From Oculina patagonica (taxonomy: Eukaryota), in contig NC_135764.1 of NCBI RefSeq assembly GCF_052425735.1, positions 18,786,001-18,850,000 of the forward strand: a stretch of 64,000 nucleotides of DNA, in the 5' to 3' direction. The notes under the pieces are model-generated. The model had not been told where the DNA came from, ran no database searches, and worked only from the letters and a program-made list of their open reading frames with translations. Positions 1,606-28,168 of this stretch are shown piece by piece. The position numbers and the translations under genes are program-made. The number at the start of each line of letters is the position of its first letter. Within the stretch, counting starts at the first letter, position 1.

Positions 1606-4600
1606 TCACTTTAAAGCTTCCACTTTAAACTCGATACACGGATAGCAAAATGGTCCAACATTCTCTACCGGTACACTGTCATCATCTCCCGTCACTTTTG
1701 TCTCCAAGGCAACCGTACAATTTCTCAGCAACACTACCAGTAAAACCTTCATGAAGGTGTCAGCCACGCGGTATCCCATGCACCTTCGCGGGCCAATACC
1801 AAAGCGACACAAACTTTTACGCATGCTCGGTGTTTCTTCGTCGAATCGTCGAGGATTGAAAGTTTCGGTATCGCCCCAGACTCCTGTGTTACTGTTCACT
1901 GCACTGTTGTCAACTGATACTTCAACCTGAAGGGAAGAAAGTTAGAACATACAACTTGTAAGTCTAATGCAAGGGAAAACACCATAGTTTTATCTTACCA
2001 GCAAAAGCAACCGTGTTTACCGTATCTACTGGAATAAGCGCCGCGGCGCTTATTAAATTTTTCGCTCCTCAAGTGCGGCGCTTATTTGAGGGCGGCGCTT
2101 ATTTAAAATTTGGACGCCACAAAGAATTTAACAGAAGTTAAAAATAGCGTCTTTTGATTGTCAGTATTTGTCTCTTGCTAAAGAGGGAAGTGGCGCTAGC
2201 TGTCCTGGCAAAGTTCGCGGCCTTCGCAACATTTACAGAACTACGTATTATAAGAACGTTGGATAGAAAAACTAATGGGCGAGCGGTAAAACTTATCACA
2301 TTTAACTGCAAGACATCGCTTTTGGTGGAAAAAAATGTCCAATTTTGTTTTAGAGTTGCCCTGTTGTGCTGTTTTTTCGACTATTTTGCTTGTTTACAAG
2401 CAAAAGTAGGAGATTAGGAGTGGTGTGGGCAAAATTTGGAACTCTCAAGGGACTTTTTTAATTTCTCAAGGGACTGTTTTAATTTCTCAAGGGATTTCTT
2501 TCCGCTCAGTGGGCGATGAAAGGGTCTCTTATTATTACTGCGTCAACACTTGCAAGCTCGTGTTAAAGACGTGACTTGTCACATATTCCGGTGTAGGTGA
2601 TGAAAGGGTCTCTCATTAGTATTGCGTCAACACTTGCGGGTTCAAATTGCGGCCTCGTGAAAAAGCATTAAAAACGCTAACAAAATTACAGAATTCAGAC
2701 TACTACAGAGAACCTTGAAAGAAACTTTGTTTAGAATTTATTTTTAGTTTGGATGAAGTCAAGAAATGTGTTGACAAGCGGCAGAGTATCGAAATTTTTC
2801 GCACCGTGCTGTACTGCACGGCAGAAATAATTATCCACATGTTCATGTTGAAAGCGAAGTTTTAATTTGAGCAGCCGGCTTTTGAAGTCAATTGTACACT
2901 AAATGGATTTACCGATCGTTCAAAAAATTACATCCAAGTTCATAGCAATAACAGTACATTACCATTTCGTTCTCAAAAGACTTGAGAAGCCGCAATTGGT
3001 CCTTGTTTAACTCCGTGATTTGAATTCAAAACGCATTTGTAAGCACCATTACACCATATCTTCGCGGCGGTGGAAGGAAAGATAAATCCTTCATCAACAA
3101 GGTTTCAGCACTCTGTACTCCATGGTTTTCCGTTTTAAGGCCACTTTAAAATTCTATAGTGTTTCTCCTTTCCGTTTTAAGTCCCAAATATGGTTTTTTT
3201 TCTTGTTCAGAATCAAAACAAGGCCTTGGAAGTTTGTAAATACAACCCGCGCGGCTCTACGATTTCCTTGTACGATTTCAATGCACGGAATAATACGAAA
3301 AACCTTCTTCTAGGACCCCAAGAGTTCTCTAAAAATATGCGCAGAAAACAGATTTTGATTGGTTTATTTGCCGTTATTATCTATAGAACAATACAAGAAC
3401 CAAAAAAACTCCAGGGAGGGTGGGAAAGGGCATATTCCGCTGTAGGTGATGAAAGGGTCTCTCATTAGTATTGCGTAAACACTTGCGGGTTCAAATTGCG
3501 GCGGCGTGGATTGAAGATTACTGTAATTTTTGCATACGCAAGCCAAATCGGTCATAAACTGTTTAAAAACGTTTTGTTCTTTGTATTAAAAGGAAAGTTC
3601 TTGGAGAGTGCGTTTTATCCAGTAGTACCAAGTTATCAGTACAAAGATACGCACGTTAATGCTTTAGTTTGGCAAGAGTGAAGTTAATGAAATAACATAA
3701 ACGGATACAAATTCCAGTGGTTTTTAACTGTTGCGGAGTGGAGTGGTTTTCAACGGTTTACGAAGTTTAAAGGAGCAATAGAGCTCTATCTACTGCTCAA
3801 TAAATTTGTTTTCAATAGCACTGAACTTGACAGTTGTCATAAACTTTTCTTCACCGTTGGAAGAATTCACTCTGGAAAAGAGACAGATGTTCAGTGGAGC
3901 AAGAGAGTTACCTTGAGTGCTAAGTGAGTACAATCTTGCGTTGATGTTGTTTGTATGAATGTGTCATGTGGTACAGATGTTTTATCGATAAAGTTATCGC
4001 TACATGGTTTCGCTTTTAGTCTTGGAATTTGAAGTATTTCCGCACTGCGGATGGTAAGCGAGTGGGGAAACGTCAACGCAGTTGCAGTATCTGGCAATTC
4101 TCATTTATGCTCGTGATTTTTGCCATCAGTAACTGGTTAACTCATTTGCCATCGTTTGCCAAAACGTACAATTTTTAAAGTGCTACGCTTTTCGTTCTTT
4201 TTTTTCTCTCACTTCTGTTATGTTCAATTTTTTTTAACACGTGTTTTCTTTTGTTCTGCCGTGTTTATTTATAGCCGTTTACGCTATTCCGTTGTCTTAG
4301 TTGTTATCAATGCTGACACACCCCTTGACACACCAGTTGAGATAAAATTCTCCCGTTATATGCTAAGCTGCGCTAAAGAAGTTTTTTTTCTTTTTAGAGA
4401 GATAAGCTACCACTTCCCTTATTCCATTTCTACGGTATGATACATTCTATGAATTTTTGGTATGGCAGTTTTAGTATTTAATCCTGAATTTCCTACTGTG
4501 CGATTAAGTAAGTCGCTAACAGGCTCGTTAGTATGTTTTCGTGAGCGATGCTTTTGAATTTACACAATGGACGCACAGCAAGATAAAACGAATTTCCGGT

Positions 4601-7600
4601 AATTGTTTGAGTACATAGGTGGTGGAAAACACGGATCCTGCTTCCCAAAATCCGTAACCGGGTTTACATTACGTTTTTGACGTAGGGTATAAGCAAGCCC
4701 GACAGTTTATAAATTTCAGTTAGAAACTAAACAGATGAAGTCTTCTTTTTAAGTTATCACCCAAGATTTTATTCTTTCTTATAATTTGAAACAGATTTTT
4801 GGTCTAATTAATTAGACCGTAAATCGCCAAAATTATTTTAATTCGCGTTACTTGCGTTCTCCTCCAAATTTGGTATACAGGAAGTGAATTTTATCCGCCA
4901 ATTACCTAGTGATTCCGGCCAAGAAACTTTAATGTGCCTTACATGACGATTTTTGCAGAAGTTATTCCTTCAGCAATATGGCGGTTTCGGCCCCCCCAAA
5001 TAATCATTACCTTAAATTGACGTATTTTTAATTGAAATGGTTCTTTGTTTTGGTAGCTGTTGTTGCCACTTTTTAAAATGTTTCACACTTCTGCGTTTTA
5101 CAAAATTCACACATACTGCGTTTTAAGAAAATACGTCAATGCGCATTTTACAATGTTCCTCCCATCAACCGTACCGTTCCACCGTTCCTACATTCCTCAT
5201 AATAAACTAACCAGAATATCCAGGACAACACAAATTTACATATTTCAACACTTGCACTCCTAAACAAAGTGAAAAGCCTAATTCACCCTTTAAAAAGAAC
5301 TACTCCATACCACAATTGACTGCCAACAGATAAACCATAGCAAAATAGTCGTAGTCTCACAGAGACCTTTGATTAGTTGAACGCAATTCCTCGAATAAAC
5401 GCCGCATCGGGACTGCGGCGCTTATTCGGGGGCGGCGCTTATTAACTTTTTTGTCCCAAATGCGGCGCTTATTTGAGGGCGGCGCTTATTCGAGTAAATA
5501 CGGTATGTTGGATACTCAAATAAATCAACTGAATTTGGTACAAAGGAAAGGAACTTAAACAAAACTTGAATTATTCTCTAGATTCTTTGAGCACTCATTA
5601 CCAGTCCTGGTTAGAACTACTAATTTACACAACAAGCCAAAGGTTCTTACCCCTGGGGGACTGTGAAAATTCCCGATTACCATTGGACAAGTAACATATT
5701 CCGGGGTACTGATCACCATCACGGGTCGTTTTCTGGCCGATTCCTTTACCACCTTACCCAGGAAATCCATTCTGTTGAGAGCGTCTAAACTCAAAGGTCC
5801 TGAAAGCTAAAGGAAAGTGGCATGCATTATTAGATTTTAAACGCAGTTTTATCGTACAGGGATAAAATAAATCAATGCGTCAGCTGGGCTAAAAACGATA
5901 ATACTTACAGCCTAAATACCGTACTAGATCTAAACAGAGAACGTACTTGATTCAGTTGATTGCCGCGTGCTGAAAGTTGAAACTATTTCTAATAAACTTG
6001 CATAATACGGTCACCCTTTTAACTAATGTGGCCACTTTCTGTTACTCTTTTGGCAGCCGTATTGCTTTAAACTAGCATCTGTTGGTTGTTCGTGTGGAAT
6101 AAAGCAGATACAAAACAATATTGTGTTTTCAGGAACTAGGTTTAGGAAAGCTCAGATTTCAACGACAAACCCTATTTCATAGGCTCGATTTACAGTCGCT
6201 TTTCGGGAGGAAAAGGCGGCGGAAATCAGTGATTACATCTAGTCCGCCTTATATGCGGGGGGCCGAGGTTCAATACCTCGCCGGGTAACCTCACATAGTA
6301 TATCTCGATATTAGACAATTACTCACTTTATACAACAGTTCTTTGTAGTTACCCTATGTCAGATCACCTGGGTTACCAACAATTACAATAATCCCAGTAG
6401 AATCTCCTTGGATTTTTAGCTATAATAGCGAACTACTTACTGGTGAAGTCGAGTCCTTGATCTCAGCTGTTAGTTCCTTCTGAACGTCTTGATGAAGAGC
6501 CACGTGAAACAGAAGCCAGGCTGTGGCACCGCACGTGATATCTACATTAGCAAGTGACGCTTCTTCCAGGGTTTCTTGAAACTAGAAATGAACAAAATGC
6601 CTCTTAGATGCCATTAAACTAAACTAGAAACAGGGTGAGATTCATACTAGCAATACAACAATGTTGGACTTAGCTAGGAAGGTGGGTGGAGTTAGTAAAA
6701 AGATTTGGCCTGGCTTGGATTGAAATTGATGAAATGCTGAGATGAAAGTCTCCTACGACCTAAAATAGCTGACATTCACACGTAACTACCTCTTCTTGTG
6801 ATACAACTCCAGGATTTTTAACAAGAGTTTGTTGGATCTTGTAAAAAGCACAGCTCGTGTCTTGCATCTTCCCCGCTGTAAACCGCTCTTCAAAACTAAG
6901 GATAATAAGAGACTGGGTTAGAGCGGTGGAGATCATAACAATATTAGAAACCAAAGCAAATACAAACTTAATCGTTTTATACCAAAATGTTGTATGAGAT
7001 CGATGATAAGTGAAGGAATAGTGAAGTAGAGGTAGAACAAGGCGGAATATTATTGGTCTTGTATTTCATTCCGTTGGCTGAAAACACGATATCAATACCC
7101 TGGGTGATGTTTAGAGGCAAAAACGTATATCCGTCATTACTTATCTTCAAAAATTATATAAAAAACTGCCTTTGAGCCTTTGAGGTTATAGCGAGGTGAT
7201 CACGGCTGTTTGCTCGTGATCAACTACGTTATTGCATTATTCAACATGCAGCAACAAACTTCAGAATAAAGATAGAAATACAAGAAAAAAGATACAAAGG
7301 ATTTGCTTACCATTTATTGAACTGCAGCCACCTTCTTTCAAACTCCGCCAATCTCTTGTTTGTGTTGGTAGGTAAGTATTTGTAAAATGGGAATTTAACA
7401 AGAGGGTTTGTGAAGGTATCGGCGATAAGAGTTCCTACCAGCGCTCTTAGATCAATCAACTCTTGTAGCTCCTCTTCAGTAACATCTCTGCCGTATGTGA
7501 ACTTCATTAGCATTCTAAACGTCAGGAGAATCAGATCATCCATGGTAATGACACCCTGAAATGAAAGAGTATTAAAGCAATGTCTAAGCGAACGATCGGT

Positions 7601-10600
7601 CGCCTTTGGATTACATGAGAGATCAAGTTATTTTGCTAGAGCACTATGTTCCAACATTAAATCAGCCAACCAGCCAACCCTTCTGTCTGCCCGTCCATCA
7701 ATCATTCATTCAGTCAGTCAGCCCACCGGCCAGGCAGCTAGCCAGCCAGTCAGTCAGCCAGCNNNNNNNNNNNNNNNNNNNNNNNNNNNNNNNNNNNNNN
7801 NNNNNNNNNNNNNNNNNNNNNNNNNNNNNNNNNNNNNNNNNNNNNNNNNNNNNNNNNNNNNNNNNNNNNNNNNNNNNNNNNNNNNNNNNNNNNTATGTTC
7901 TCACATTTCTAAGGTTGATGTAAGGTACATATATTTAAGTGAGAACGAGAGGATTAAGTACCTACTTAGAGCTGACAATGAACATACATCAAAAGTAGTA
8001 GGTAAATATATACATTCAATGTTTCAAAAAAGGAAAGAGCTTCTTAACTTACAAGCACAATGAACATTATAATTTTTTAATTTTTACATATATTGACATT
8101 ATGAATTGTATAAGAATCAAATATTTGTTATTTCTTAAATGTATTAGTAAATGCTAAAACCTTTGTTGTAAACAGACCAATACCTCCCTTTGGAGAGTAA
8201 GGCGCAATAAAGATATACTATTACTATTACTATTAATCAGTCAGTCAGTCAGTCAGTCAGACAGACAGTCAGTCAGTCAGTCAGTCAGTCAGTCATCGAT
8301 CAGTCAAAATACTATAAAGCATTTGCATGTAGCTTGTATACAAGTTCCTGATCAGTTACTGATACCTTTTTCTCTTCCACGATTAGTCGTAAGTACTGTT
8401 TACATTCCTGTTCCATCATATCCACAGTCCGTGTCACGCTCTCTGTACTGTAACACCCATCAAAGGTACTGCGTATGCGCTTGTGTGCGTCACCGCTGGC
8501 CGTGCCAGCTGCCTTACCAAACAGCTGACGAAACACACTGCCGAGTCGGAAGTCCTTCAGTCTCTCATACTTGTGTTGTTTGGACATAAACTTGACAGCG
8601 ATTTGTGGATCGGAGATTATGCTGTTGAAAACAATAATAATAAAAAAACACACATAAATGCTACTCAATTTCTTTGCTGAATGAACTGTTACTGACACCG
8701 ATGTCATCTTTCATCGCTCGATTTTCTTCAACCTCAACAACTACAGAAACAACAACAACAACAGCAATAAGACCAATTACAGACTTTCAGCGGGCATGCA
8801 AAACATCACAAAGTCACTTTTTTGTCATTAGGTGATACAATATATATTCGCAGCGTTCCCTGACATTACACAAAACACAGTGGCAAATTCCGGCAAAAAT
8901 TGTCGTAAAACTCATGATGTAGCATTTCGTTTGGCATAACACGTTGTAACTATTTTTTAGCTTCGTCGTAAAAAGAAAGGCTCTTTCCTCCTCTACCTTT
9001 TCATATTAGCTGAGGTTGCCGAAGAAGGTCACAGAAAAAATTGGCAAAATTCAAAATGCTCTTAGACTGCGGGGTACGTGGAGAAATTGCAGAATTCGCG
9101 AGCACATTCCCTGCGGCTACGTGATTCCCACGCCTCGCGAGCACATTCCCTGCGGCTACGTGATTCCCACGCCTCGCGAGCACATTCCCTGCGGCTACGT
9201 GATTCCCACGCCTCGCGAGCACATTCCCTGCGGCTGCGTGATTCCCACGCCTCGCGAGCACATTCCCTGCGGCTACGTGATTCCCACGCCTCGCGAGCAC
9301 ATTCCCTGCGGCTGCGTGATTCCCATGCCTCGCGAGCACATTCCCTGCGGCTACGTGATTCCCACGCCTCGCGAGCACATTCCCTGCGGCTACGTGATTC
9401 CCACGCCTCGCGATTTCTCTGCTTGCGATTTTCTGGCACGATTTTTTTCGTGGGAACACAAATCACGCCCGACCAATGGAAAAAAAAAACGAAAAAAAAA
9501 AAGCCTTCGTGTACATTACGTATAAATTCTAACTGAAAATAGGAAAATTAACAAAGCAAACATTACCAAGCCAAGTAAACATTACTTTGTACTTACAGTT
9601 TTGGAGGACCGGGTAAAAATCGGAGCAAGTACATTCCGAATTTCTTCAAGCTGTCATCTTTCATTGCGATTAATGTTGGTGAAAACGTTTTAAATCCAGT
9701 TCCTTTAATTACTTCACCAGAATCATTTTTCCAGAAGTAAACCTGAAAGTAAGAATTACAAAACGTAATATAAAACCATCTTCGTTTCTTTTTCGGTGCA
9801 TAAATCGGGGAAGTCCTTAGATTTCTTAGACTATAACCGACCCGATTTTTGTAAAATAGATAAATAAATAACCTTTATTTAGACACGGTGAGGATTAGAG
9901 CTAAAAGCTTGTGGGGTCGTGTCTACCCGATCGAATTGGAATTTGGAAGTCTAATATTTAATTAAAATATATTTAAATATTTCTCACGAAATATTCAGCA
10001 CACTTGCCCCGGGGTGGGATAAAAACAGAAGGCAAATGCCCCACTTTCGGGCTCATCGTGCAAAGAAAACTGCTCAAGACTCACAAGGGGGTCAAATGTC
10101 CCCGTGGGTAGGCAAATGCCCAGCCCCATAATCTCCTTCGCAGTCGTTGTTTCGGAAGCGTTGCGTGACATCCCCCCAACACACAAAAAGCCTGCGAGCA
10201 ATACCCCAGGGCAGCAATAAAATGAGACACTCCCCCGGGATTAATCGGAGAGCAAATTCCCGGCTTATGCCAGTGGGGGTGGGGGGGGGGAGTTGATAGG
10301 CAGCGCCATAAGTTATAATTTTTAAATATTTCTATGTCGTATCGCTCTTGAAGAGCACGGTACCGAATAATTAATGCGGTATCCAGGTTAGTTCACTCTT
10401 TTCTGCCCAGATAACGGAGATCTTTATACTAATTGGGTCGTGAATCAAATTATCCATTCGCACGAATCGAACTTGCACCTGGGTCACTGTTGTCACTAAA
10501 GAGATCCAGGGAAGAGATGCAGAACTTTTCGGATAGACAACACTGCCTTTCGACTCGAGCTCGTTATTAACATTATCCATTTGACGAATCGATCGAATTG

Positions 10601-10832
10601 GCAGGCACTGCTTTCACGGTAGTCGGAAATGAGATGCAATTTTCCGATCGACAACGAATAGAAATTTCTCTTTTCGGGTCGAATCCAGTGGACAGAATGC
10701 CATGGTGAATGACGCCAAGTTCAAACTCTCTAAGCGAAATACAGTTACACCTACCTCTGATATTTGTTTGTAAATCCACAATAATGAAACTAACAAGATA
10801 GTTAGGACAGCGAGGACAAGGCTAACAATCAT
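1606..10832 (-). CDS. Cytochrome P450, ~482 aa, 8 exons (10832-10755, 9742-9597, 8621-8366, 7555-7311, 6895-6790, 6581-6441, 5806-5651, 1926-1606); membrane-anchored, GliC-like by motif recall
   Basis: All introns are GT-AG and the phases are consistent (1449 nt total). N-terminal anchor MIVSLVLAVLTILLVSLLWIY, I-helix ETLEEASLANVDITCG, K-helix ESAR, PERF-like FNPRRF, heme motif FGIGPRRCMG (1774-1803). Confidence 0.93.
2020..5503. mobile_element. Non-autonomous Tc1/mariner/pogo-type DNA transposon (~3.5 kb) in the last P450 intron
   Basis: TA|ccgtatctactggaataagcgcc at the left end and ggcgcttattcgagtaaatacgg|TA at the right. Repeated subterminal gcggcgcttatt motifs. No transposase ORF seen. 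Confidence 0.8.
7700..8305. repeat. (TCAG/CCAG)n microsatellites and an assembly gap (N run 7763-7893) in P450 intron 3
   Basis: Seen directly at about 7700-7762 and 8237-8305. Confidence 0.9.
9096..9413. repeat. 39-bp minisatellite, 8 near-identical copies, in P450 intron 2
   Basis: Unit tcgcgagcacattccctgcggctacgtgattcccacgcc in head-to-tail tandem, with no spacers. Confidence 0.95.
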
Positions 10833-12234
10833 CGTGAAGACGGTTGATCAATTGCAACACTGAAGCCTGAGCGCTTATCGAAACTGAAGTTGAGAAATGT
10901 CACGCGAAGCCGGGTTTTGTTAGTTACTGCCGGGTTTTCCCCGAAATCACGTGGATACGAGAATGGGTCAACACTATATATATTTTGATATTCACTGGTT
11001 TGGTAATTTTCCCTCGATCTAAAATTCTCCTGTTAACGCACTAGGGTGCATTTCATGTGACTTTGTTGACGTCAATACAAGTACAAGGACTCAAGATCAA
11101 CTGACCTTTGAGAGTATTTCAAACCGGAAGTTCACATCCATATGTCGAAACCTCTGGTCACCCCTACTTTGCGGCGCTCTATTGCGCTAGTACGCCAAAC
11201 ATTATTACACATGGCTTGACAGATTTAGTAGACATTGCAGCTGCGATGAAAATAATAAGCCATATGAGTGTAATCGCTGGATATATAGCTCTGTCTCTTG
11301 GTTCATGTATTTGCATGCTTGATAAATTTTCTCAGTTGAAAACCAACTCTCCTCCAGAGGTTTCATGTGACTTGTTGACGTCAAAACATGCAAAATTTCC
11401 CGGATTCCCCGAAATCATAGATTGACGTAAATCACAACAGTTTCGTAAAACATTTTTTTTCCTTTTTTATGCGTTGTTGTAAATGCCCCCCCCCCCGGGG
11501 GGGTACTCCCCCAAAATACCTATACGGGTATGTGCTGCCCAACGGGGTCGTGATTTTGGGTTCCTGATCCGTTTTAGAGACGATGCCTAGAACGGGGTAT
11601 GATATTTCGAACGCACGAAAGTTTCAAATTATCAGCAGCAAAATTGACCTATTTCTTGGACGGGGTACATTTCGAATGCAAGTTCTCAAGTTGTTAACTT
11701 TGGAGACCCGGGCGGCACATACCTACCCAAAACATACCTGAGTACCCCCCACCGGGGGTGTAAATGCTTACAAAAGATTGATTCAATTGCGGTGGTTCAA
11801 CCCGGTTTAGCAAAGAACCAAGCGTCGTGTAAAGAGGAACTTTAATTTAAAATTTTAAAAATCGTTTGGCACATAATTTCATTGCAGTTCAATTGGGAAT
11901 TTCAACTAAGCGGAAAAATGAAAATGAAATTTAAGTTGCAGATAATTGGTTCTACCGGTGGTTCTTGGAATAAACTAATGCATGTGATCGATTTTGTAAA
12001 ATTGATGCTAAATGTGTCGACACGTCACCTGATAAGATTAGTTCCGGGAGATTGTAACCTACTTCGTTCCGCTTCGTTCCAGCGGAGCCGTAGCTGTTGA
12101 TTGGCCAATTCTCGCGTGGTAGGCGACATAAAAGCGGTCCCCAGTAGAACATTTGCATTTCAGCTGTACAGCGCTATCTCGAAACCCTTTGCACGCAAGT
12201 GTGTTACGCCAGGAGCTGAGCTTTTGCAGTCACA
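10833..12234. promoter_or_regulatory. Shared divergent promoter region of P450 and CDPS, with a duplicated TTTCATGTGACTT(T)GTTGACGTCAA element
   Basis: Head-to-head start codons 1.4 kb apart. Element at 11051-11075 and 11361-11384 (M-box/E-box plus CRE). kB-like sites at 10932-10942 and 11401-11410. Confidence 0.5.
11487..11758. mobile_element. MITE, MULE-like, 9-bp TSD
   Basis: Termini cccc..ggggggtactc / gagtaccccccaccggggg, flanked by the direct repeat tgtaaatgc (11478-11486 and 11759-11767). Confidence 0.7.
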
Positions 12235-14217
12235 ATGGTTCTCAATCTTGCTCAAGTCGAAGACAGCCTCGTTTTCCAAACAGGTCAAGATGTGATGGCA
12301 AACAACGGTGTTGTACTGTTTGGAATGAGCCCTGGAAATCCGTACTTTAAATCCCGCGTCATCGAGGACTATGTAGAGTACTTGGGAAAGGAACAGAGAA
12401 GAATCATTGTGGTGGTACCTCAGCAGCCTGCAGAACACACATACAGAGCTTTGGGAAGCAAGGATGCTGTCAAACGAGCCAAGAAAAATTCCAGTCAGCT
12501 CAAGTCGCATTGCAGGAGAGCAATTGAAAAGGTAACAGACGATAAGTTTAAGCACTGTTTATTATAGAAAATGGGAAAGTATCGGATTTTTCCCCTTCTT
12601 TTGCAAAACTATATGAGCAACGTCGCAGTACAGTTATATACCTCCTTGTGCAATTCTCCGTTTGGTTATTTACGTTATATTTTTTAATGAAACATCCAAT
12701 CGGGTTAATATTTTGCACAGATAAGTTGATAACAACATAATTTTATTAGCTAGCTTTCTTCAGCCCCGAAGAAGGCATTTTGACATTTTATTGGGCCCGG
12801 CCCGAAAAAAAAAATAAAAAATAGTTATCATAACTTTGGGTGAAGATGACATCTCATCTGAATTCATCGTCCAAAATGTCCTGACTTACCAGCTTAGTAT
12901 TACATGAAATTTTATCCGTGGAGTACATTCTGTTTTACGTCACGTCACTATATTTTTGCCTCACTTTACAACAATAGGGCCAACTTGGCTCAATCGTATA
13001 GCTGTGCGACTGTATTAGTTAAAATACCCCGGTTTAATAATAACGTTCTTACCCGGGTGATATTTTTTCCCCTGTGTAGGTGGGTAAGTCTGAGGCAATG
13101 GCCGGAGATTTTTACATGTTGGACTGGACTCGAGAAGTTGATACACACAAAGCATATATAGAAGCATTGGACTTCGTTATTAAGTTTTATAAGAACAATT
13201 CCAACTTCCGTTTAGATGTGGTAAAATCTACTGCTAAGGTTTTGGGAAAAGACGCCACTTCCTCAGATGAGAGTGAATCAGGTAGGCAAGTGGTTTTCCA
13301 CTAAAAAAAGGCGATTAGTTTCTCAAGAATTGTTGTGTCCTTACAATCGTTCTTTAAACTTAGTTTGTGCTTCTCCCTGCTAACATTAGTAACATATCCG
13401 TCCGTTTGATGCCATGTTTTAATTTCCAACTCAGTTGTACAGTAGAATCCTGATTTCTCGAAACCTTTGGGGGAACGTTGCCAAAATCGGCAGTTTCAAG
13501 GGTTCGAGCGAAATCGGGATATTACTGTCCGTGACAGCTTTCATCTATTTCTTGTCTTCAGTAAAGCATCTGATAGGTCTATCATAACTGTTGAAACATT
13601 TCACAATAACGTTTTTCTTGCTTAGTTGCTGTACGGCTTTCCTCAGCCCACAGGTCAATTCATTTCGATGACGTAGCCGAGACGAAAGCTTCGCAAGCAT
13701 CACGTGACCAATCCGAAACGACCGCGCGACGAATTTACCGAACGGCGTAATTTTCGAAGCTTAAAAACTAGGCAAAAAGCTGGCGAATACAGCCGCCTCT
13801 CATTCGAATGAGAGGCGGCTGTATTCGCAGCCTACTAGGCAAACGTTTCCTCGCAACAAAGGGCAGGAGAGGGAGGGTGTGTATGGCAGGGTGTTTGCAT
13901 ATAATTAGGAGAGACTCTACCTCAGTCTACTGATTCAGCACATTTTGTTGATACTGATGTGGTTTAACTTATTGGTAAATCTTTCTTTTTAAGAAACCTC
14001 TGACTCTGAGCTCGAGGTAGACGAAAACATCCAGGAAGGAGTGTACTACTTGCTAAAAGAACTTGCTTTTATAATCTCCAGCAAAGAGATCTTTAGGACA
14101 GACAGCGTGGCTGTCATTTACCATCGCAGCTGGCCTGTGTATGAGAAGTTTGTAAACGGAGATTATGACGGGGAGCCCAAGAAAGGACTGGGACTGGCCA
14201 TTATAAAATACAATTAA
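12235..14217 (+). CDS. tRNA-dependent cyclodipeptide synthase (CDPS, NYH subfamily), 240 aa, 3 exons (12235-12531, 13080-13281, 13994-14217)
   Basis: GT-AG introns in phases 0 and 1 give 723 nt. Motifs: LFGMSPGNPYF (catalytic Ser and Asn, AlbC S37/N40), basic helix KDAVKRAKKNSSQLKSHCRRAIEK, YLLKELAF (Y178/E182), VIYHR (Y202/H203). Exon 3 is absent from the ORF track because it has no start codon. AATAAA at 14496. Confidence 0.93.
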
Positions 14218-16124
14218 ATACTTGCCGAAATGTCGCTCTCGGTGAAGAGTTTCGAGTGGTGCGTGAATCGGGACAATAGCTTTACTAGTAAGAGTTTTTT
14301 TAAACAGAGGCCTTTTGTAAGGTTTCAGTTACGAGGTAAAGCTCGGAATTTGAAGAAGAGACTTCTTTTTCTACCAGTTTCTAGAAAACTGTTTGATATG
14401 ACACAACGAGTTTAAACTTATTCGTTTCCAGTTAATTGTACCTTCATATTTATTTATATTTATAACCACTAAAAATATAAGTCAGAAAACTGATCAATAA
14501 AACAGATAAGAATCACAAATGCTGTTTAGTTTTAACTGACTCTACTCCCCAAGAATAATGTTTATTTGAAGTAAGCGCAACCACAAACAAGTGCTCTTGT
14601 TCTTTTATACAGCTGGGACTTAGTGTCTCTAAATGTAAAAGTTTTAAATTACAAGAAAAGAAATTATGAGTATACATAATGTGATTACGCCGGTTGTATG
14701 TGCTGCGCGAGCATATTGTTTGTCCAGAGTTCCTTTAGCTGCTTTCAGAGATCTCCTCTTTTGCTCATAGCCTCGAGTCAGTCATTACATATATTGAACA
14801 AGTGGACCACATTTTTCCATGGTATCGTGACGTCATATAATGTTCAAAACTCAAGTGGAACCACGAGCCGCAGGCGGATGGTTTCAATGCAAAGTTTTGG
14901 AAATTTTATGTCGTCAATACTGTGATCTATAAGAGTGTAGAACATGGAAAAATATGGTCGATTTATAAGTTTATTTTTTTTACAGCAAAAATTCACCTGT
15001 TTATTAGAAGAGAAATCACGCGCACATGACAGCCGTAAGAGCAGTCACTTTTTTGGCTTGAAGCGCACGAGTTCTTTGGAAATTTTGCCCCAAACGCTTC
15101 ATTTCGTAACTCTTAGGTTTCGAATAATTGGAAAAGTCGCGACAATTTCTCAAGTCGCTAAAAGGTGCCTTGCTTTGCGTTACAGGTTATGTTACTTTCA
15201 TCAACCATAGCTCTCGATCGCGACCAATGAGCGCGCGGGAATTCTCTCAGTTATTGTAAAAAACAACAAACAAACAAAAAACCTACGAAACTAAATAAAA
15301 ACGAAAAATAAAGCTCTATAAAAATTACAAGTTTTTCAGATGCAGGACAGATACTTTCAAATATCTAAATAGGATTGAGATTTCTGTCAAACATTTTCAC
15401 TATGCGCAAAAATAGTTTCGGATCTTGGAACAAAATTTCACTCATATAGATATGAACACACAGAGAGTAAAGACTTCGTTGCTTTATTTAGAAATACAAT
15501 GTTCATTATTGTTTGGGGCAAATAACAAATTCATCATTCTAAGCGTAGTGTATGTACACTGATAACGATATCATTCTTTGACATCTTAGAGTTCAGTGGC
15601 TATCATCACTGAGTACACGGTATTAAAAGAGAACTATATATGAAGTTTATTACCCTCGTTATCTAACAAATGTTCGTGTTAGGCAAGTTAATTTAAGAGA
15701 AAGTGTATGAGCGTAAGTGATAGGGCCCCAACTCTTCTTTGAGTTAAGATCCTTGGAGCTAGCGTACTGCAATGAAGCCCTGAAGCTTTTAAAAATTGCC
15801 ACTTTGGTCACCATGGGTCGAAAATAAGTTAATTACCCAAAGAGATCGTCCTCAAAAATTCCCTTATTTTTCTTATCATTATTTTTTTCAGTTGTAGCCA
15901 ATTTGTTCCATTTGTAAGTAAATTAATTTAATTTTAATATTACAAATGAATTAATGTTGTATAATCATTTCTATAGACAATACTTTTTTAAATAGAATGA
16001 CGCTCGTTAAAAGAGTCTTACATCATTATTTTAAATAGCACCCAGGACTGGAAACATATTACCATAGTGCTCATGGCTGAAAATGTACTGTAGGCAAGGG
16101 GTGAGCTCCCTTACAGCCGATATT

Positions 16125-20489: not shown

Positions 20490-20943
20490 ATCGAAGGCTG
20501 CGAATGTTGCTTTCAGTAATGGAATAAATATTTGCTGTCGATAACAAGCTTTGACAAGGAAACTTGTTCAAAGATAAACAGCGAAATGTTCCTTTCACGG
20601 CTTGAGCTTGTTTTATGTGCCTCTTGCAAAATGAAGGAACTCTTCAAAATAGATTTTGAAATACATTACTCTTACAAGCGCGTGACGTGACGTCATTGGC
20701 GCTGTATCTGAAAGGGAATACCCGCTTCGTCTTGTGACTTTCGGGGAATACTTCCGGTTTCAAGGCCAGTGTGACTTCAACGTTGCACAATCGTTTTTCT
20801 CCGAATTTAGGGGTGTGAAATCCATGTCAGTTCTCTTTATAGATTAATTAGTACGGACTTTCCCTTTTCTATGCTTATAGCCCAGTGAAAACGAAACTTT
20901 GAAACAATGAAGTTCAAACCCTGCTAGAGATCGGTCAGGCACA
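20490..20943. promoter_or_regulatory. Short bidirectional promoter between the MFS and acyltransferase-fold genes
   Basis: About 450 bp between divergent ATGs. TGACGTCA at 20688, TGTGACTT at 20733 and 20770, kB-like GGGAATACCC at 20714 and CGGACTTTCC at 20854. Confidence 0.5.
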
Positions 20944-23900
20944 ATGCACCGATTATCGAGTCCTCGCTCTGTCTTCACAAGAGTGTTTTATTATCGGAAC
21001 AGTTTCCCTTCCTCGCTGCTATGTGCAGCAACAAAACCCGCAGAGCATCTCATAGAGGAAGAGGCTAACCGCATCACAAAGGATATCAAGGCAAGCCTTT
21101 CATTTTTTTGAGCATTGAGACCACAGTGTGGCTGTGGCTTGAGACCATAGTTGATCGAGGATAGAAATCAACATTAATTTCATATTGACCAGGAAAAATA
21201 ATTTTAATTAATAATTCTTTAAAAAGGTTCAAGGTAAAGCCAACCTACAGTACCTTTGCTTCCGAATGCAAGCAGACTTCCGCTTCGTGTAAATCGGTAC
21301 TCGAATACGGTACTCGATGACTCTCTTCCGAATGGGGATGATTTTATTGTTTCATAATTGTTGTGCGTGGCAAACACAAATCACCACGTGCAAGTTCTGT
21401 AACGCTGTTGAATTGGGTGGTGTTTCTGTTAAAAAGAACTTGGTTTCTGCCTTCAAAATTTATTTGGAAAGTAGTGCTTTAAAAGATTCTCGATTCATCG
21501 ATAGGAAAAGAAGAAATAGCAAAGAGGGCCTCTCAAGAGGGGGGGGGGGGGGGGAAACCATGTTCCTTTGTTCCCAACAAAATTTTCCTTGTGTTCCCGT
21601 GTTCCCTAAGAGTTTTTTTTTTCGATGAAGTCTTTACAAATGAGAATGTGACAATGCGCGTATGAAATAAATCAGCAATTGTGTGAACTGTGGATAATCA
21701 ACCCAAGTGACGCAGTGGTGACGTCGTAAACTCAACATTAACCCTGTTCTCATAAGCTCTTGACGTCCTGAACAGCTGTTACTGACGCACAAATGATATC
21801 AGGTGGCCAAATTCTGCTAAACTGAACTACACACGGAAAACCTATTAATTTCACGGGGCAAAACAGGATTTTCTGGCGTAATAAATTTAAGTATGACCTT
21901 CGCGGCACTGAGCTATCTTTCAAAAAATTTAGCCCTAATAAGGCCAATAGCTATAAAAACCCTCTCCCCCCAACCTGCAAAATCAATGTCCGAAAAAGAA
22001 AAGTTACGTTGTAATAAAAACTTCAAATATTCTACTAGTCACAGGAAGCGTTGGGAAAACCAGACTTGCAGAAGAGAGTACTGAAGTGGGATGAAAAGTT
22101 GCCAATTCCTGACCCTCCCCCACTGAAGAGTCTCTTGGACTTTTTAGTCCGAAGGCGAACACTGTCTTGTTCAAGTGGTTTGCAGCTTGGTTTGAACAAG
22201 CTTCTTGTTCGATCTGCTATCCGTGTCTTGGGACTTCAACGTGCACATGAAAGGTGAACGAGAAAAAAACTTGTAATATCTAGACTGGTGACACAGTAAA
22301 TAGTTCTTTTATATTTAAAACTGGTCCCTTGAGAAACAAATATATTTTTTTCGGGGGATGGAGCTAGGGGAAACGTCGAGATTCGAGGGAAAAAATTGAT
22401 TGGTTTCCCGACTTTAGAAGAACGGAGCTCGAGGCCGTCGGTCAACATTCGCGGATCGCGGTGTACTGTTACCCTCTGACGTCATAGATTTTGCAATGTA
22501 ACCCGCTCAGAGACTTTTGGCGGGAAAAAGTTTTGTTGTTGGAGGAAAAAACTCATGCTTTTCTATTCCAATGCCATTTATCTCCTAGATTTTCTTAAAA
22601 GGGCGTAGGACAAGTGAGGTTATAGGCCGCAACCTTGAAATGTGCAAGTTTACGCAATTATTATGCATTGTAAATTTATGTGACTGCATGTGTGAAATAA
22701 ATGTTATCTTTTATAGAAAACAATTATCTTATTATCCCCAAAGTCCTCTCAGGCTTTCAGTCTCACTTCTTTTTCCTCGTTCACCAAAGGTTAAACACAT
22801 TATTTTCTCTTGGTTTTAACGCATACTAATATATTGTTTTCTTCTGGCCTTAGAATGTGTGAACAGCACTCAAGCGACACTGTACACAACTGTTGGTATG
22901 CGCCAGCCAATCACGGCGACACATTTGGTATCCGCCATGATGAAATATACTTCCACGAAGACATTATTCCTTCACAGCCTGTGACGTCATATGCTGTGCT
23001 GATCCGGGGGAGCCCAGGTAATCCTGGGACATCAGTTGATGGCGGCATTGGAGAAAACGAGAGTTCACTAAATGTTGCTTCGATAAACAACCCAGATGTC
23101 ATGGTTGACCGTGCCGCCTCTCTTGTAGATGGACTCATCATGAAAGCCAGGGATTTTTACATGAGCAGTGAATTTAACCAAGATGTGATCAAGAAGACAC
23201 CACTCTCTATGCAGTGGTATAATTACATCTTTTCGTGCTCTATGCAGTTTCTCCCAGGTTCCATTGAGCGCTACAAGGCCCCTGCAGGTCACTCAAGGCA
23301 CATCATTGTGATGATGCGTGGTAACATGTACAAAATGGATCTTATATACAGCAATGAAGACGGACAAGAGAAGAGAATCACAGGCAATGAACTAAAAGTA
23401 AGTAAAGTAAAACTTAAAGGAGAAGTTCACTCCAGAATGGTCATTTATTTTTTATTTTAAGATATGTTATTCACCAAAATTTTAGCCTCCAACGTTCGCT
23501 ATAACCCTATGAAATCTTTTGCAAAACGCGACAACTGAACGCCGCCATCTTGGAGCTGGTAATGTATGCGTGACGTCAAAGAGCTCAGCCTGAAGTTCGG
23601 AGGGAAAATTTTAATAGTCGAAACTCCTTGTTTTTTGTATTTCATGGAGCTCTGTTTGAGCAAAATGAAGCTGCACAAACAGGCATTTTGTCAAACAAAA
23701 GCCACTACGAAGAAACAAATAGTTCCGAGTATTTATATTTTAAAGTAAGCACTTGTAGATACACATACATACATGTATATAGTATGTAGTGAGTCCAGTT
23801 CACTAATAAACATAATTATATTTATATTTTCCCGCCAAACTTCAGGCTGAGCTCTTTGACGTCATGCATACATTACCAGCTCCAAGATGGCGGCGTTCAG

Positions 23901-26589
23901 TTGTCGAGTTTTGGGAAAGATTTCGTATAACCTGCGTAGCAGAGCGTCGAAAGGGGAGGGAGGGGGAGTTGGGAAGAGGGAGAGAAAGAGAAAAAAAAAC
24001 GGAGGGGGAGTGGGGACGTTCCCTCTTCCCCCCTTCCCCTTCTTCCCCCCTCTCCCTTTCCCTCCCCTTTTTACGCCTGCCACGCAGGCTAGATTTCGTA
24101 GGGTTATAGCGCACATTGGAGGCTAAAATTTTGGTGAATAACATATCTTTGTATAAACTTTTTATTGGCGTAAAGAAAATAAATGGCCATTCTGGAGTGA
24201 ACTTCTCCTTTAAGCCACCAGAAAGATCATTACAGTATCTTTTACAAGGACACGGAGGTTCAGCTTATTTTATCTAGTTTTATCAATTTCAATTTGGAAC
24301 GTCGGCATTTACACACGCAGTTTGAGTGGTTTTCGCGCGAATACTTTCAGTTTACTGTACTTAAATGACACCTGGTACGCATGGACATGTTGGCCAGTAA
24401 GAGTTTGGCAATCACGTGCAATGGACCAGTTATAACTTGCAACTCATCTTTTATGCCCAGAATTGAACATTTTTAAAAAGGTTTTATTATTTGGCAGTGA
24501 AATAAACACCGACGCTTTCTCCAAGGAAATATTTTAGTTACATAAACCCTATGGAAGATTCTTTGGGATATTCCACAACCACCACTTATGGTCCACTTCT
24601 TTTTCTATGTTTACAGAGTCAAATGAAAGATATTTTACAAATGGACGCCTCGAGAGAACAGTCGACTCCGATAGCTGTTCTAACAAGTATGACTCCAACT
24701 GAGAGATGCCAGGAAGAACAACGCCTAAAGTGCCTCAGCGAACGAAACATCACTAATCTCTCGCTTGTCCGCGATGCCCTCTTTGTCGTCGCGCTGGACC
24801 CTGACGAATATCCACAAACAGCAAACGAAGCCATGTTCGCGCTTCATTCGGGAAACTTCGTAAACCGCTGGTATGACAAGAGCGTGCAGCTGGTTGTGTT
24901 CGGCAACGGTGTGGCGGGATTCGTTAATAACTATTTAGCAGGAATGACAGGAACAGTCGGGACAAACTTTGTGCGGATTGCTGTGAGAAATGAAAGGCTA
25001 TACCAAGAGAAGACGGTTAGCGGTAAGTAGTTGTGTAGAGAAAACAGAAACGAGACAAAAAAGAAAAAGAAAAATGGATCAGAAACTGTTACTTATGAGT
25101 GATCGAAAGAAAGAAAGGAAGAACTGATGAATTAATGAAAAATGAATGAATTTATTAATGAGTGAATGAGTGAATGAACAAGTGGTGGAATAAATGAATA
25201 AACAACACTGAGAACATGGCAAAAACTGATATAAAAGAGCGATCGTTGAAAAAAGTTTAAAATTGGTTTAAAACTGATTTTTCTTGTGTAAGTACATCCA
25301 TCTTAGATCAAATGATCATTTGCGAACTACTTAGTTGTAAAATGTCAAATGTTATTTTCACTTTCAAATATTTGATTAGATGATGAAGACAAGATCTGGC
25401 CAGAACCCTTTGCTATCAGCTGGGATGACAGTGCAGACGGATATTTCAAACAGAAGATTAACAGTGTAATCAATACCAGTCGAACATCTGGGCCCTTTAA
25501 GCCGCTGTCTCAAGACGTGTTTAAAATCTGGTCTGGCTCCAGTTTTGAGGAGATGTGTAAGGCGCATCAGGTTACCCCAGGTGGTGCCTTCCAAGCTGGA
25601 CTGCAGCTGGCGCTCGCCAAGATTGCTGGGAGATGTATGAGTGTAAATGAAGTGGTCAGCATAAGGTGAGACTTAATATAAGAAGTGGAAACTATGTTTG
25701 GAAAGGTTTTATAATAATGAAAAACGTAGTCCTAGTTTATCAAAGCCCGTTAGCTAAATGACTTAAAGTTTTCTTCCTTGTTTGCTTACAGCGGGCCTTG
25801 CTGTAAAATAACTGATTTTCATCAACTCATTTCTTTAGTTACACAAGTTTTCAGAGCTTTATTTTCCAGCCGCGTGCGATGTACGATCATTCTTTTCTAG
25901 TTCTTTTTTAAAATATTCCTCGACGTTTTTATTTTAGGATAGGTACTCAGTTTTCTTTATCTACAACATTTGATTCAACGTTTTTCTCTTCCAGGCACCT
26001 TCGGTTTGGCGGAATGACATTAATGGATAGCAGCATGGCGGACATGACGAAATTCGTCGAAGAAGCCAGCAAACCAGCACAACACAGCATTCAAGACATA
26101 AGTGAGCAGGAACGTTCGGTACTGAAAGCTCTGTTGAAGAAAGCAATTCACAGCTACAAAGACGAGGTCCTGCGTTATAAGAACGGTGAAATCAATCTGT
26201 GGCATCTAGACTCTCTTTATAGAAATCTTGGTCTGGCTAATCGTCTTCCGTTCCGAAAAACTCCACAATTTGAACTGAAGAGGAGTTTAAAAGAAGTTGT
26301 ACTGGGATATCTTAGAGCACCTAAATTCAATATACTGCCGCCCCAGGTCGCCGAAAACGTGACATCCAATCCCTGCTGGTATCCTGAAATCGAAGCTATC
26401 GGGAGGCCTGGGGTCAAGTGCATACTGCCACCAACCTCAATGGCGCTGCATTACATGTTTGGGAGAAATGCGATTTCCATCACAGTGAATGCAAATCCTG
26501 ATCATCCTTGTTATAAAAACGAGGAGGAATTTGTCAAGGTACTCGAGAAGTGTTTGCAGTTCGTCACAGCTTTGCTTGATTCAAAATAA
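20944..26589 (+). CDS. Choline/carnitine O-acyltransferase-family protein with divergent active site, ~730 aa, 6 exons (20944-21090, 22039-22253, 22854-23397, 24617-25022, 25380-25665, 25995-26589)
   Basis: Family motifs LPIPDPPPL, PLSMQWYNYIFS, SRHIIVMMRGNMYK, ALFVVALD, NRWYDKSVQLVVFGNG, FQAGLQLA. Phases are consistent (2193 nt). Exon 1 requires a GC donor (AAG|gcaagc) and is the least certain part. Confidence 0.85.
23418..24209. mobile_element. TTAA-flanked MITE (Kolobok-like) with long inverted arms and a nested insertion at about 23929-24091
   Basis: TTAA|aggagaagttcactccagaatgg ... ccattctggagtgaacttctcct|TTAA. The arms match for about 190 bp apart from the nested piece. Confidence 0.8.
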
Positions 26590-27385
26590 TAATAATGGTG
26601 ACGAAAACAGTGACACTTACAACAGTAAACTGCCACCTATTGCTTTGAAAAAAGTTTGAGCAGTTGTTTAGTTGAGTGTCAAAATTAATTTGCATTTGCT
26701 TTGATTTTGCATTACTACGCTTAGTGATCAGTTTGACCCCCGACACTTTCTCATCCAATCAGAAGTACAGCCAATCGTGACGTGTACGCTGCATGTAGTA
26801 CATGCTGCATGCATGTATCGATTCTGGTATTTACATATTAACATGTAAGGTGTTATTTGAAGCTATTTTTCGCTATTTTTTTTTCTGAGGGAGTAAACTA
26901 TTGGGAAGTACAGTCTTTCTTTTTAAAATTAATAATGACACTTCCATAATATGTTCATGCGCGCGCAAATAAAATCGTTGCTACTTCGCTTTTTTCGGTA
27001 TCTACGTCTTTGATAAAAGTCATGGTACGTTCTTTCAAATGTCTAGTGACTTATAGAACCCTCGCCTGCGGCTTAGGTATCCCCCTAACTGGGTTTTCTC
27101 TATTTCATCACGAGAAAGAAGTGACCTGAAGATTATGCAGAGGCTGTCAGAGGTAATACAAAGACATGGAAACGCAAGCTCTACTCATGTCTACTTCTTA
27201 CGTACTTGATCTAGTGAGGACAAATAAAACTGAAAACAGGCTACCGATCAATTTTACTGATTAAATTGGAAAAAGCCAGTACGTAGCTCAAAAATCGAGA
27301 GTCGCGATTTTTTGCATTTGATGCCCCAAATGTAAGTGTGATAATGTCAATAAATTTTATTTTGAATACTCGGTGCTTAACATCT

Positions 27386-27467
27386 GCTGTGATGGCCGAG
27401 TGGTTAAGGCGTTGGACTTGAAATCCAATGGGGTTTCCCCGCGCAGGTTCGAATCCTGCTCGCAGCG
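27386..27467 (+). tRNA. tRNA-Ser, anticodon UGA
   Basis: 82 nt. Acceptor stem GCTGTGA/TCGCAGC, D-arm TGGCCGAGTGGTTAAGGC, anticodon arm TTGGA-CTTGAAA-TCCAA, long variable arm GGGG-TTT-CCCC, T-loop GGTTCGAATCC, discriminator G. Confidence 0.97.
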
Positions 27468-28168
27468 TCAGCTTTGGTTCGTTTTTGTAACAAACCATGG
27501 ATTATTGGTATCTATGAACAAACTTATACGTAGCAATATATAAATAAAGAACCATGCACGAGGGGAATTCTGTGTAAAGCCTGGTTGGGACTTCGTCTTC
27601 TTATCCGGCCTTCACTTGGCGTAAATATAAGCACTTTTCTAGGAGCCGTATCGGAGATGACAAAACTTTTGTTCCACAGTGGATTAGTTCTTTCAGAAGT
27701 ACATGATCTAGTTCTTTCCCCAACAACTTTCGTTACACTGTGCGTTGCTTTGAAGCTTTCAAATAGAATAGACTTTCCGGAATACAGAAAAAAAAAAGAA
27801 AAAAAAAGATAATTATAATGTTTAACTTAATTAATAAACAAAAAATGTACGAGGCGAAGTTTAATTCGCGCGACACGAAACAGAAAGGTTCAGAACAGGC
27901 ACTAAATCCACGAAAAACAATTATTAAGTTCCTGTTCCTTTTATTTTTTAAGCAAAACAAGAGATTCCAAAGGTATAAAACAAAAAAACGGAAATTCCGA
28001 AGGAGACAGGGCAGTGCCTTTGTAGACCGGTCCTCTGTTCCCCTTTCCGGTCTCGTTTCCCGATTCCTCCTCTTCCTTGTCAGCAGCTGTGTCTGTCACG
28101 CAACGTGACGCTGGGGGAACAGTGGAGACGACCCGCTTGGACCGTATTTTAAAATCCAAGTTTGGACA

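Follow-up and report, generated by a model that had tools for sequence, protein, structure and literature searches.

A probable three-exon cyclodipeptide synthase gene of the stony coral Oculina patagonica and the cytochrome P450 that lies head-to-head with it

Introduction

Does a stony coral carry an intact enzyme for making cyclodipeptides, and do the genes beside it belong to the same pathway? The question is raised by a 64,000-nucleotide stretch of the Oculina patagonica genome (contig NC_135764.1, positions 18,786,001 to 18,850,000; hereafter the window, numbered from its first letter), in which a list of open reading frames (ORFs) cuts one gene into pieces of 110, 74 and 58 amino acids. 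An earlier note, made from the letters alone, had proposed that these pieces are an intact, intron-containing animal cyclodipeptide synthase (CDPS) fragmented by the ORF track. The analysis presented here bears this out: with high probability, positions 12157-14510 of the forward strand are the three-exon gene of a cytosolic CDPS of the NYH subfamily, the stony-coral ortholog of Nvec-CDPS2 from the sea anemone Nematostella. To our knowledge, animals have rarely been shown to make their own non-ribosomal peptides; in microbes, diketopiperazines serve as signals, antibiotics and siderophore-like molecules.

Animal CDPSs were predicted in 2010 (PMC2922099), and one was characterised in 2011 by Seguin et al., as cited in PMC5816076. 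Coral CDPSs had already been noticed in the 2018 survey, which, among the orthologs of the gene described here, kept only Exaiptasia KXJ16536 and dropped XP_020612772 (Orbicella) and XP_015762793 (Acropora digitifera) as 'not retained (too short...)' (PMC5816076). The coral gene belongs to a known, characterised animal enzyme family and, taken alone, is of modest novelty. With it, the one animal CDPS characterised so far gains a full-length, well-supported ortholog from a coral, and the gap left when the Orbicella and A. digitifera orthologs were excluded as truncated models is filled. The part that deserves follow-up is a conserved and duplicated pairing of CDPS and cytochrome P450 genes.

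Gene structure and transcripts

The exons were joined in silico at GT..AG introns to give a coding sequence (CDS) of 723 nt and a protein of 240 amino acids. The elements of the gene are as follows (a slash marks the splice site; UTR, untranslated region):

12128-12134, forward strand: TATA-like element ATAAAAG found by pattern scan, about 25-30 nt 5' of the transcript-contig start at 12157; inferred promoter element of the CDPS gene
12157-12531, forward strand: exon 1, with 5' UTR 12157-12234 and CDS 12235-12531 (amino acids 1-99); donor AAAAG/gtaaca
12532-13079, forward strand: intron 1, GT..AG, phase 0
13080-13281, forward strand: exon 2, amino acids 100-167 with the split codon; acceptor tgtag/GTG, donor ATCAG/gtaggc
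13282-13993, forward strand: intron 2, GT..AG, phase 1
13994-14510, forward strand: exon 3, CDS to 14217 (stop TAA), then 3' UTR; acceptor ttaag/AAACC
14496-14501, forward strand: polyadenylation signal AATAAA found by motif scan

The start ATG stands in the context ACAATGG, with an in-frame TGA six codons upstream. Over all 240 of 240 residues the spliced protein is 100% identical to KAL9967375.1 / XP_078376743.1, which GenBank names 'hypothetical protein ACROYT_G025584 [Oculina patagonica]'; the gene model is already in the public annotation, there without a function. This identical database entry served as the reference for whole-protein comparisons.

Logan contigs of four sequencing runs (X1, X3, X5 and X7) were aligned to positions 11900-14700, and they recover the junctions that the earlier note had wished to see confirmed by RNA. 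Both splice joints are exact in contigs of X1, X5 and X7, which come from three studies and two organisms: the joint of intron 1 (12529/13078, cut +2, GT..AG) is seen in these three runs, and that of intron 2 (13279/13992, cut +2, GT..AG) in all four. Individual contigs of 1025 and 837 nt cross both joints, and one X5 contig terminates in the SMART template-switch oligo, indicating that it derives from cDNA. Coverage runs from 12157, where the contigs of X1, X3 and X5 begin, to about 14474, shortly before the AATAAA at 14496; past 14474 the contigs diverge from the window, and their loose ends finish in '...CAATAAAAAA'. At the other end, X1 and X3 contigs carry 14-16 unmatched letters (...AACGCTTGCTAGTT) directly before 12157, opposite window positions 12141-12156, which may stem from an upstream exon or a leader, or else from a difference between strains.

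Intron 2 contains a perfect, spacer-free palindrome of 46 nt (23+23 nt) at 13783-13828. Summed contig depth in the bin around it (13780-13873) is 440-680x in all four runs, whereas the flanks have 0-20x; the region is a dispersed, transcribed repeat, possibly a MITE-like element (miniature inverted-repeat transposable element).

Family membership, catalytic residues and predicted fold

Against the hidden Markov models (HMMs) of the family the spliced protein scores far above both cut-offs, which settles the profile check that the earlier note had called for: 86.8 bits for PF16715, the Pfam CDPS family (cut-off 27; profile positions 11-219 of 220 covered), and 116.4 bits for TIGR04539 (cut-off 45). 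The active Nvec-CDPS2 gives 87.8 and 115.5 bits on the same models. Each exon on its own matches part of a CDPS profile, and the parts are colinear: positions 11-93 of the Pfam profile for exon 1 (E 9.7e-12), 108-153 of TIGR04539 for exon 2 and 157-219 of the Pfam profile for exon 3. The residues of interest, including those of P1 and P2, the pockets for the first and second substrate, are distributed over the exons as follows:

Exon 1: S32 in GMSPGN, N35, the P1 residues L28, G30, V60 and P62, and the basic helix alpha4
Exon 2: W115 (P1 position 119 in AlbC numbering), four P2 positions on one helix, and the first part of an acidic loop rich in Ser, Glu and Asp
Exon 3: Y185, E189, F192, I193, V207, Y209, H210, R211, W213 and P214

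The catalytic set is complete only after splicing, as had been proposed, with S32 on exon 1 and Y185xxxE189 and Y209-H210 on exon 3. By alignment and motif indexing, S32, Y185, E189 and Y209 correspond to Ser37, Tyr178, Glu182 and Tyr202 of AlbC, and all four are invariant or nearly so across a 40-sequence alignment. N35, Y209 and H210 correspond to AlbC Asn40, Tyr202 and His203, which places the coral CDPS in the NYH subfamily. Ten Lys/Arg residues fall within residues 76-102, where the model shows a helix (78-101) that is expected to be the alpha4 patch; in CDPSs a basic patch on alpha4 binds the first tRNA (PMC4066775). Neither HIGH nor KMSKS occurs in the 240-residue sequence, and the absence of these two ATP-binding signatures sets CDPSs apart from true aminoacyl-tRNA synthetases (PMC4066775).

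The AlphaFold model of the protein has a predicted local distance difference test (pLDDT) value of 92.7 and a predicted template-modelling (pTM) score of 0.89. When this predicted structure was compared with the PDB, the matches at ranks 1-46 were all CDPSs, followed by tyrosyl-tRNA synthetases. The predicted fold gives template-modelling (TM) scores of 0.67-0.78 to YvmC (3OQH), AlbC (3OQV), Rv2275 (2X9Q) and BtCDPS (7AZU), with 0.74-0.78 to YvmC, whereas sequence identity to the solved bacterial chains is merely 14-21%. The coral protein shares with the bacterial NYH enzymes the same Ser / Tyr-x-x-x-Glu / Tyr-His set, the N40 residue and the basic alpha4; it differs from them in having a gene with spliceosomal introns and an acidic, Ser-rich insert between alpha6 and alpha7. 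This insert (residues 157-172, rich in Ser, Glu and Asp) lies in the alpha6-alpha7 loop and is the only disordered stretch of the model, with pLDDT below 50 at residues 160-166; it is missing from bacterial relatives in the alignment, and the position of intron 2 falls inside it.

Orthology, selection and origin

Homologs were sought among 1.84 billion representative proteins with exon 1, and by a word-index search with a full-length ortholog. The close relatives, at 76-90% identity, come from Oculina, Orbicella-like transcripts, Porites, Acropora and Desmophyllum, and orthologs are present in at least six coral genera. The next closest group consists of Nematostella proteins, including XP_001636126 (Nvec-CDPS2), which is of equal length (240 amino acids), 52.6% identical over the full length and likewise of the NYH subfamily; the best matches of Nvec-CDPS2 outside Nematostella are, in turn, this coral group. 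In a tree of 95 sequences the window protein, the other corals and Nematostella form an 11-sequence clade with 100% support in the SH-aLRT (Shimodaira-Hasegawa-like approximate likelihood ratio test), within which the coral subclade has 98%. Both introns interrupt the Nematostella gene at the same codons and in the same phases as the coral gene, intron 1 after ...AI(E/K)K in phase 0 and intron 2 in the (S/K)ES/x codon in phase 1, and the Porites gene has a matching three-exon layout. The shared positions imply that the introns were in place before stony corals and sea anemones diverged. By these sequence comparisons the coral CDPS is the scleractinian ortholog of Nvec-CDPS2. That the gene is an animal one, as the earlier note had claimed, is upheld by the introns shared with Nematostella, by animal neighbours on a chromosome-scale contig and by the orthologs in other coral genera.

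Comparison with Porites lobata and an Acropora transcript, three genera in all, gave ratios of nonsynonymous to synonymous substitution (dN/dS) of 0.059-0.088; with dS at about 1.4-1.6, close to saturation, these values are approximate though clearly far below 1. On the evidence of sequence and predicted structure the coral gene very likely functions as a CDPS, and its activity is indirectly supported by the catalytic and NYH residues, the basic alpha4, the predicted CDPS fold, the transcripts and the low dN/dS. The nearest non-animal relatives, at 35-41% identity, are proteins from bacteria-like metagenome contigs.

Truncation, splitting or a wrong frame affects public models of the orthologs (OS493_006829, OS493_006830, XP_020612772 and XP_015762793, among others), and the ortholog of Desmophyllum pertusum (MU825875.1) is still split and mis-framed. 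In Nematostella, a 205-residue model is without the exon that carries YxxxE and YH, and the LOC116602083 copy adjoins a MatE efflux transporter.

The neighbouring P450 and transporter genes

Two genes flank the CDPS gene directly:

1609-10832, reverse strand: cytochrome P450 gene, multi-exon, eukaryote-type (Pfam p450 on its exons), head-to-head with the CDPS gene
1609-1926, reverse strand: heme-binding exon of the P450 gene
16149-20492, reverse strand: transporter gene of the major facilitator superfamily (MFS; Pfam MFS_1), tail-to-tail with the CDPS gene and single-copy in the genome

The ATG of the P450 gene, at 10832, lies about 1.3 kb from the CDPS transcript start, and the first exon encodes an N-terminal membrane anchor. 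A P450 tailoring gene is a typical neighbour of bacterial CDPS genes, as CYP121 is of Rv2275 and CypX of YvmC. The coral neighbour differs from these in being membrane-anchored and of eukaryotic type. The exons of the window P450 have CYP11A1, CYP4B1 and CYP3A5 as their best PDB matches, and the best matches of the CDPS-adjacent P450s overall are CYP3A, CYP21, CYP17 and CYP11A1, not CYP121 or CYP134. We considered and rejected a co-transfer of P450 and CDPS from bacteria, given these matches to eukaryotic microsomal and mitochondrial enzymes and the N-terminal membrane anchor; the eukaryotic type of the P450s indicates that they were recruited.

Orthologous loci of other corals were compared with the window. 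Porites lobata has an orthologous P450 (exons 69-86% identical) on both sides of its CDPS gene, the upstream copy being head-to-head with it as in Oculina. The MFS gene adjoins the CDPS gene in four coral genera; it follows the CDPS gene in Desmophyllum, A. digitifera and Orbicella. In Nematostella the CDPS genes differ from the single-copy coral gene in standing as four tandem copies with lectin and peptidase genes at the flanks, and neither a P450 nor an MFS gene was found within 10 kb of any copy; Nematostella either lost the CDPS-P450 arrangement or never had it. An annotated 'P450' upstream of the CDPS gene in A. digitifera was not counted, as it shows no similarity to the window P450 in the 10 kb compared.

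The Oculina genome holds a second CDPS family, four tandem copies at 35.11-35.22 Mb of another contig, C6 (35110357-35223729). These are about 31% identical to the window protein and have one intron, which lies elsewhere, after about residue 51. Montipora, Actinia and the octocoral Dendronephthya have members of the second family as well; this anthozoan family, 'A2' (XP_015767045 of A. digitifera, XP_020616991 of Orbicella, KXJ06569 of Exaiptasia; PMC5816076), is likewise NYH and anthozoan-encoded. It differs from the window CDPS, which is single-copy with two introns, in being multi-copy with decayed copies, and resembles it in having a head-to-head P450 from the same lineage, which is otherwise unique. 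One C6 copy is intact (35116471-35117284, forward strand); the other three have, respectively, His203 replaced by Gln, an in-frame stop, and Gly replaced by Ala in GxS. Every copy has a divergent P450 or P450 remnant 0.4-6 kb away, and of these P450s one is intact, one is a C-terminal exon only, one has stops and one is a fragment. The sole intact P450 adjoins the sole fully canonical CDPS, and decayed partners adjoin each other; the partners appear to decay together.

The relationship between the two P450 groups was examined by searching the 529-Mb genome with three exons of the window P450. Besides itself, almost only the C6 copies were returned, and for the two variable exons these were the sole other matches. 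Conversely, a query made of the variable half of the C6 P450 matched nothing but the window P450 and the C6 copies. Its conserved heme-binding exon was non-discriminating (48 matches, the window P450 being the 27th), and it was the variable exons that decided the relationship. The P450 beside the CDPS array of Dendronephthya is again head-to-head and is 61% identical over 206 amino acids to the C6 P450. The adjacency of P450 and CDPS is conserved across deep lineages, in Oculina and P. lobata and, as a paralogous pair, in the Oculina C6 cluster and Dendronephthya; no description of such a coral pairing was found in the literature searched, the coverage of which was partial. When the tree search was left free, bacterial groups and both anthozoan families of CDPS came out as a polytomy, and the informative result is that of a constrained test. 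A tree constrained to hold both anthozoan families as one clade had the higher likelihood and was not rejected by the approximately unbiased test (p-AU 0.70), a result that fits a single acquisition of the CDPS followed by duplication of the CDPS-P450 unit.

Substrate pockets and alternative explanations

In AlbC numbering, P1 comprises positions 33-35-65-67-119-185-186-200 and P2 positions 152-155-156-159-204-206-207 (PMC5816076). Nvec-CDPS2 has P1 LGFPWYIF and P2 ERVKRWP, and its products are cWL and cWF (PMC5816076 supplement). Pocket positions of the coral enzyme were transferred from Nvec-CDPS2 with the help of the published motif table; in this mapping the four P2 positions on exon 2 are ambiguous by one residue. 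Its P1 reads L28 G30 V60 P62 W115 F192 I193 V207 (LGVPWFIV), so the list that the earlier note had drawn up by eye (L, G, V, P, F, I, V) was right at seven of the eight positions and missed W115 on exon 2. The P2 motif ends in R211 W213 P214. With Nvec-CDPS2 the coral protein has five of eight P1 residues in common and, when the two are aligned pairwise, five of seven P2 residues, including the RWP end. By analogy, the likeliest first amino acid would be one of the Trp, Phe or Leu class, aromatic or otherwise bulky and hydrophobic; of the proposals in the earlier note this is the least firmly supported. As similar P1 motifs go with different first substrates, this guess draws on orthology and not on a pocket prediction. 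The caution of the earlier note that the product cannot be called from sequence agrees with the 2018 scheme, in which Gondry et al. file all animal CDPSs on a 'NYH, unpredictable' sheet (PMC5816076).

A number of points weigh against this reading of the gene, its substrate and its pathway. We know of no enzyme assay or metabolite for any coral CDPS, and the coupling of P450 and MFS transporter to the CDPS is proposed from their position. On the transcript side, the four runs are labelled 'RNA? (a guess)', and their assembled contigs are uninformative on strand, expression level and exact ends. One X3 contig (depth 80) is without 13 nt at the exon-1 donor (12520-12532) and retains intron 1, in which case a stop would follow directly on about residue 95; this contig may represent a natural null (loss-of-function) allele or a transcript left unspliced. 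In the pockets, the coral P1 departs from that of Nvec-CDPS2 at three of its eight positions (F>V, Y>F, F>V), and the first four P2 residues read SKVK when aligned without gaps to Nvec-CDPS2 or KAKG in the 2018 Exaiptasia register. Pockets of the xGxPWxxx type are known from enzymes that use Pro, Leu, Phe or Trp (PMC5816076), and activity in E. coli may misreport eukaryotic CDPSs owing to differing tRNAs (PMC4066775).

Among the alternatives, the one that survives best is an active CDPS whose first substrate is Pro or a small residue instead of a large hydrophobic or aromatic one. Very similar P1 motifs are found in the Pro-first enzymes CDPS 82 (LGFPWFMF) and CDPS 83 (VGLPWFFF) and in the Leu-first CDPS 77 (LGFPWLVF, product cLV), next to a Phe-first LGLPWFLF (PMC5816076), and the unpredictable grade that the survey gives to all animal CDPSs also leaves room for such a substrate. 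However, the sole characterised member of the orthologous clade prefers Trp, and the three P1 changes would enlarge the pocket, not shrink it. We regard a Pro or small first substrate as unlikely, though it is the alternative to be taken most seriously.

It is also conceivable that the gene is intact and expressed while the CDPS fold has been repurposed for aminoacyl transfer to another acceptor, for a linear dipeptide or for tRNA-binding regulation. The disordered acidic stretch would fit such a change, since it expands the alpha6-alpha7 loop at the place where the AlbC loop binds the second tRNA (PMC4066775) and since bacterial relatives do not have it; no coral CDPS product is known. Yet all acyl-enzyme and cyclisation residues are kept under strong purifying selection, and the sea-anemone ortholog, with a comparable loop, makes cyclodipeptides. 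Repurposing is improbable to a degree that leaves it well behind the substrate alternative. That the gene is a bacterial contaminant, or a horizontally transferred relic in decay, might be suggested by the bacteria-like metagenome relatives and the stop codons in some C6 paralogs. This alternative has a negligible probability and is already refuted by two spliceosomal introns confirmed in spliced contigs, by orthologs with the same introns in Nematostella and Porites and by a dN/dS below 0.1; the gene is, moreover, flanked by an MFS gene and a multi-exon P450 in a contig longer than 18 Mb.

Proposed biosynthetic route

For the preferred reading, an active CDPS orthologous to Nvec-CDPS2, the catalytic steps are taken from the CDPS family, whose members use a ping-pong mechanism (PMC5816076). 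The basic alpha4 would bind the first aminoacyl-tRNA, and its aminoacyl group would enter P1 and be transferred to Ser32. A second aminoacyl-tRNA would then give its amino acid from P2 to form a dipeptidyl-enzyme, and Y185, E189 and Y209-H210 would promote cyclisation and release of a 2,5-diketopiperazine. The CDPS product is probably handed to the divergent neighbouring P450, and the adjacent MFS transporter may export it. As to its history, the CDPS probably came to anthozoans by an ancient transfer from a bacterium, with the two introns gained afterwards.

We propose, with about even odds, that the CDPS forms half of an ancient two-gene unit of the animal genome. In this proposal a CDPS of bacterial origin recruited, as its divergently transcribed partner, a membrane-anchored eukaryotic P450 of a dedicated lineage, and the pair was duplicated as a unit into the window and C6 families and has been kept since before the split of octocorals and hexacorals. 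Together with the MFS transporter, the pair would produce and export a diketopiperazine that is native to the coral and has been oxidised or cross-linked, in a convergent animal counterpart of bacterial CDPS-P450 pathways such as those of mycocyclosin and pulcherrimin. CDPS, P450 and transporter thus offer a testable route to a coral-made modified diketopiperazine, which bears on chemical ecology and on the interaction of corals with their microbiome, and they allow one to ask whether convergence can bring biosynthetic gene pairs together in the genomes of animals.

Other features of the window

Beyond the MFS gene, at higher coordinates, the window contains the following features:

20917-26589, forward strand: carnitine/choline acyltransferase-like gene, head-to-head with the MFS gene at a distance of about 400 nt
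27385-27469, forward strand: tRNA-Ser(UGA), between the acyltransferase-like and sulfotransferase genes
28169-28891, forward strand: Sulfotransfer_4 gene, single exon, 240 amino acids (PF17784, E 2e-54)
32198-33406, reverse strand: farnesyltransferase beta, uninterrupted ORF ('Prenyltrans')
51997-53001, forward strand: mitochondrial Tam41, uninterrupted ORF (PF09139, full length)
54993-59130, forward strand: long ORFs of 517 and 913 amino acids, the second with an Endonuclease_7 domain

The acyltransferase-like gene is linked to the CDPS gene in other corals as well, downstream of it in Orbicella and upstream in A. digitifera. The presence of a tRNA-Ser near a tRNA-dependent CDPS is probably a coincidence. 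Among PDB structures the Sulfotransfer_4 protein comes closest to SgdX2, a bacterial natural-product sulfotransferase, and to the oxamniquine sulfotransferase of schistosomes. The ORF at 32198-33406 was tried as a natural-product prenyltransferase and rejected, being the housekeeping farnesyltransferase beta subunit (E 1e-154 to human/rat FNTB); this ORF and that of Tam41 are either intronless coral genes or retrogenes. The two long ORFs at 54993-59130 are probably a mobile element.

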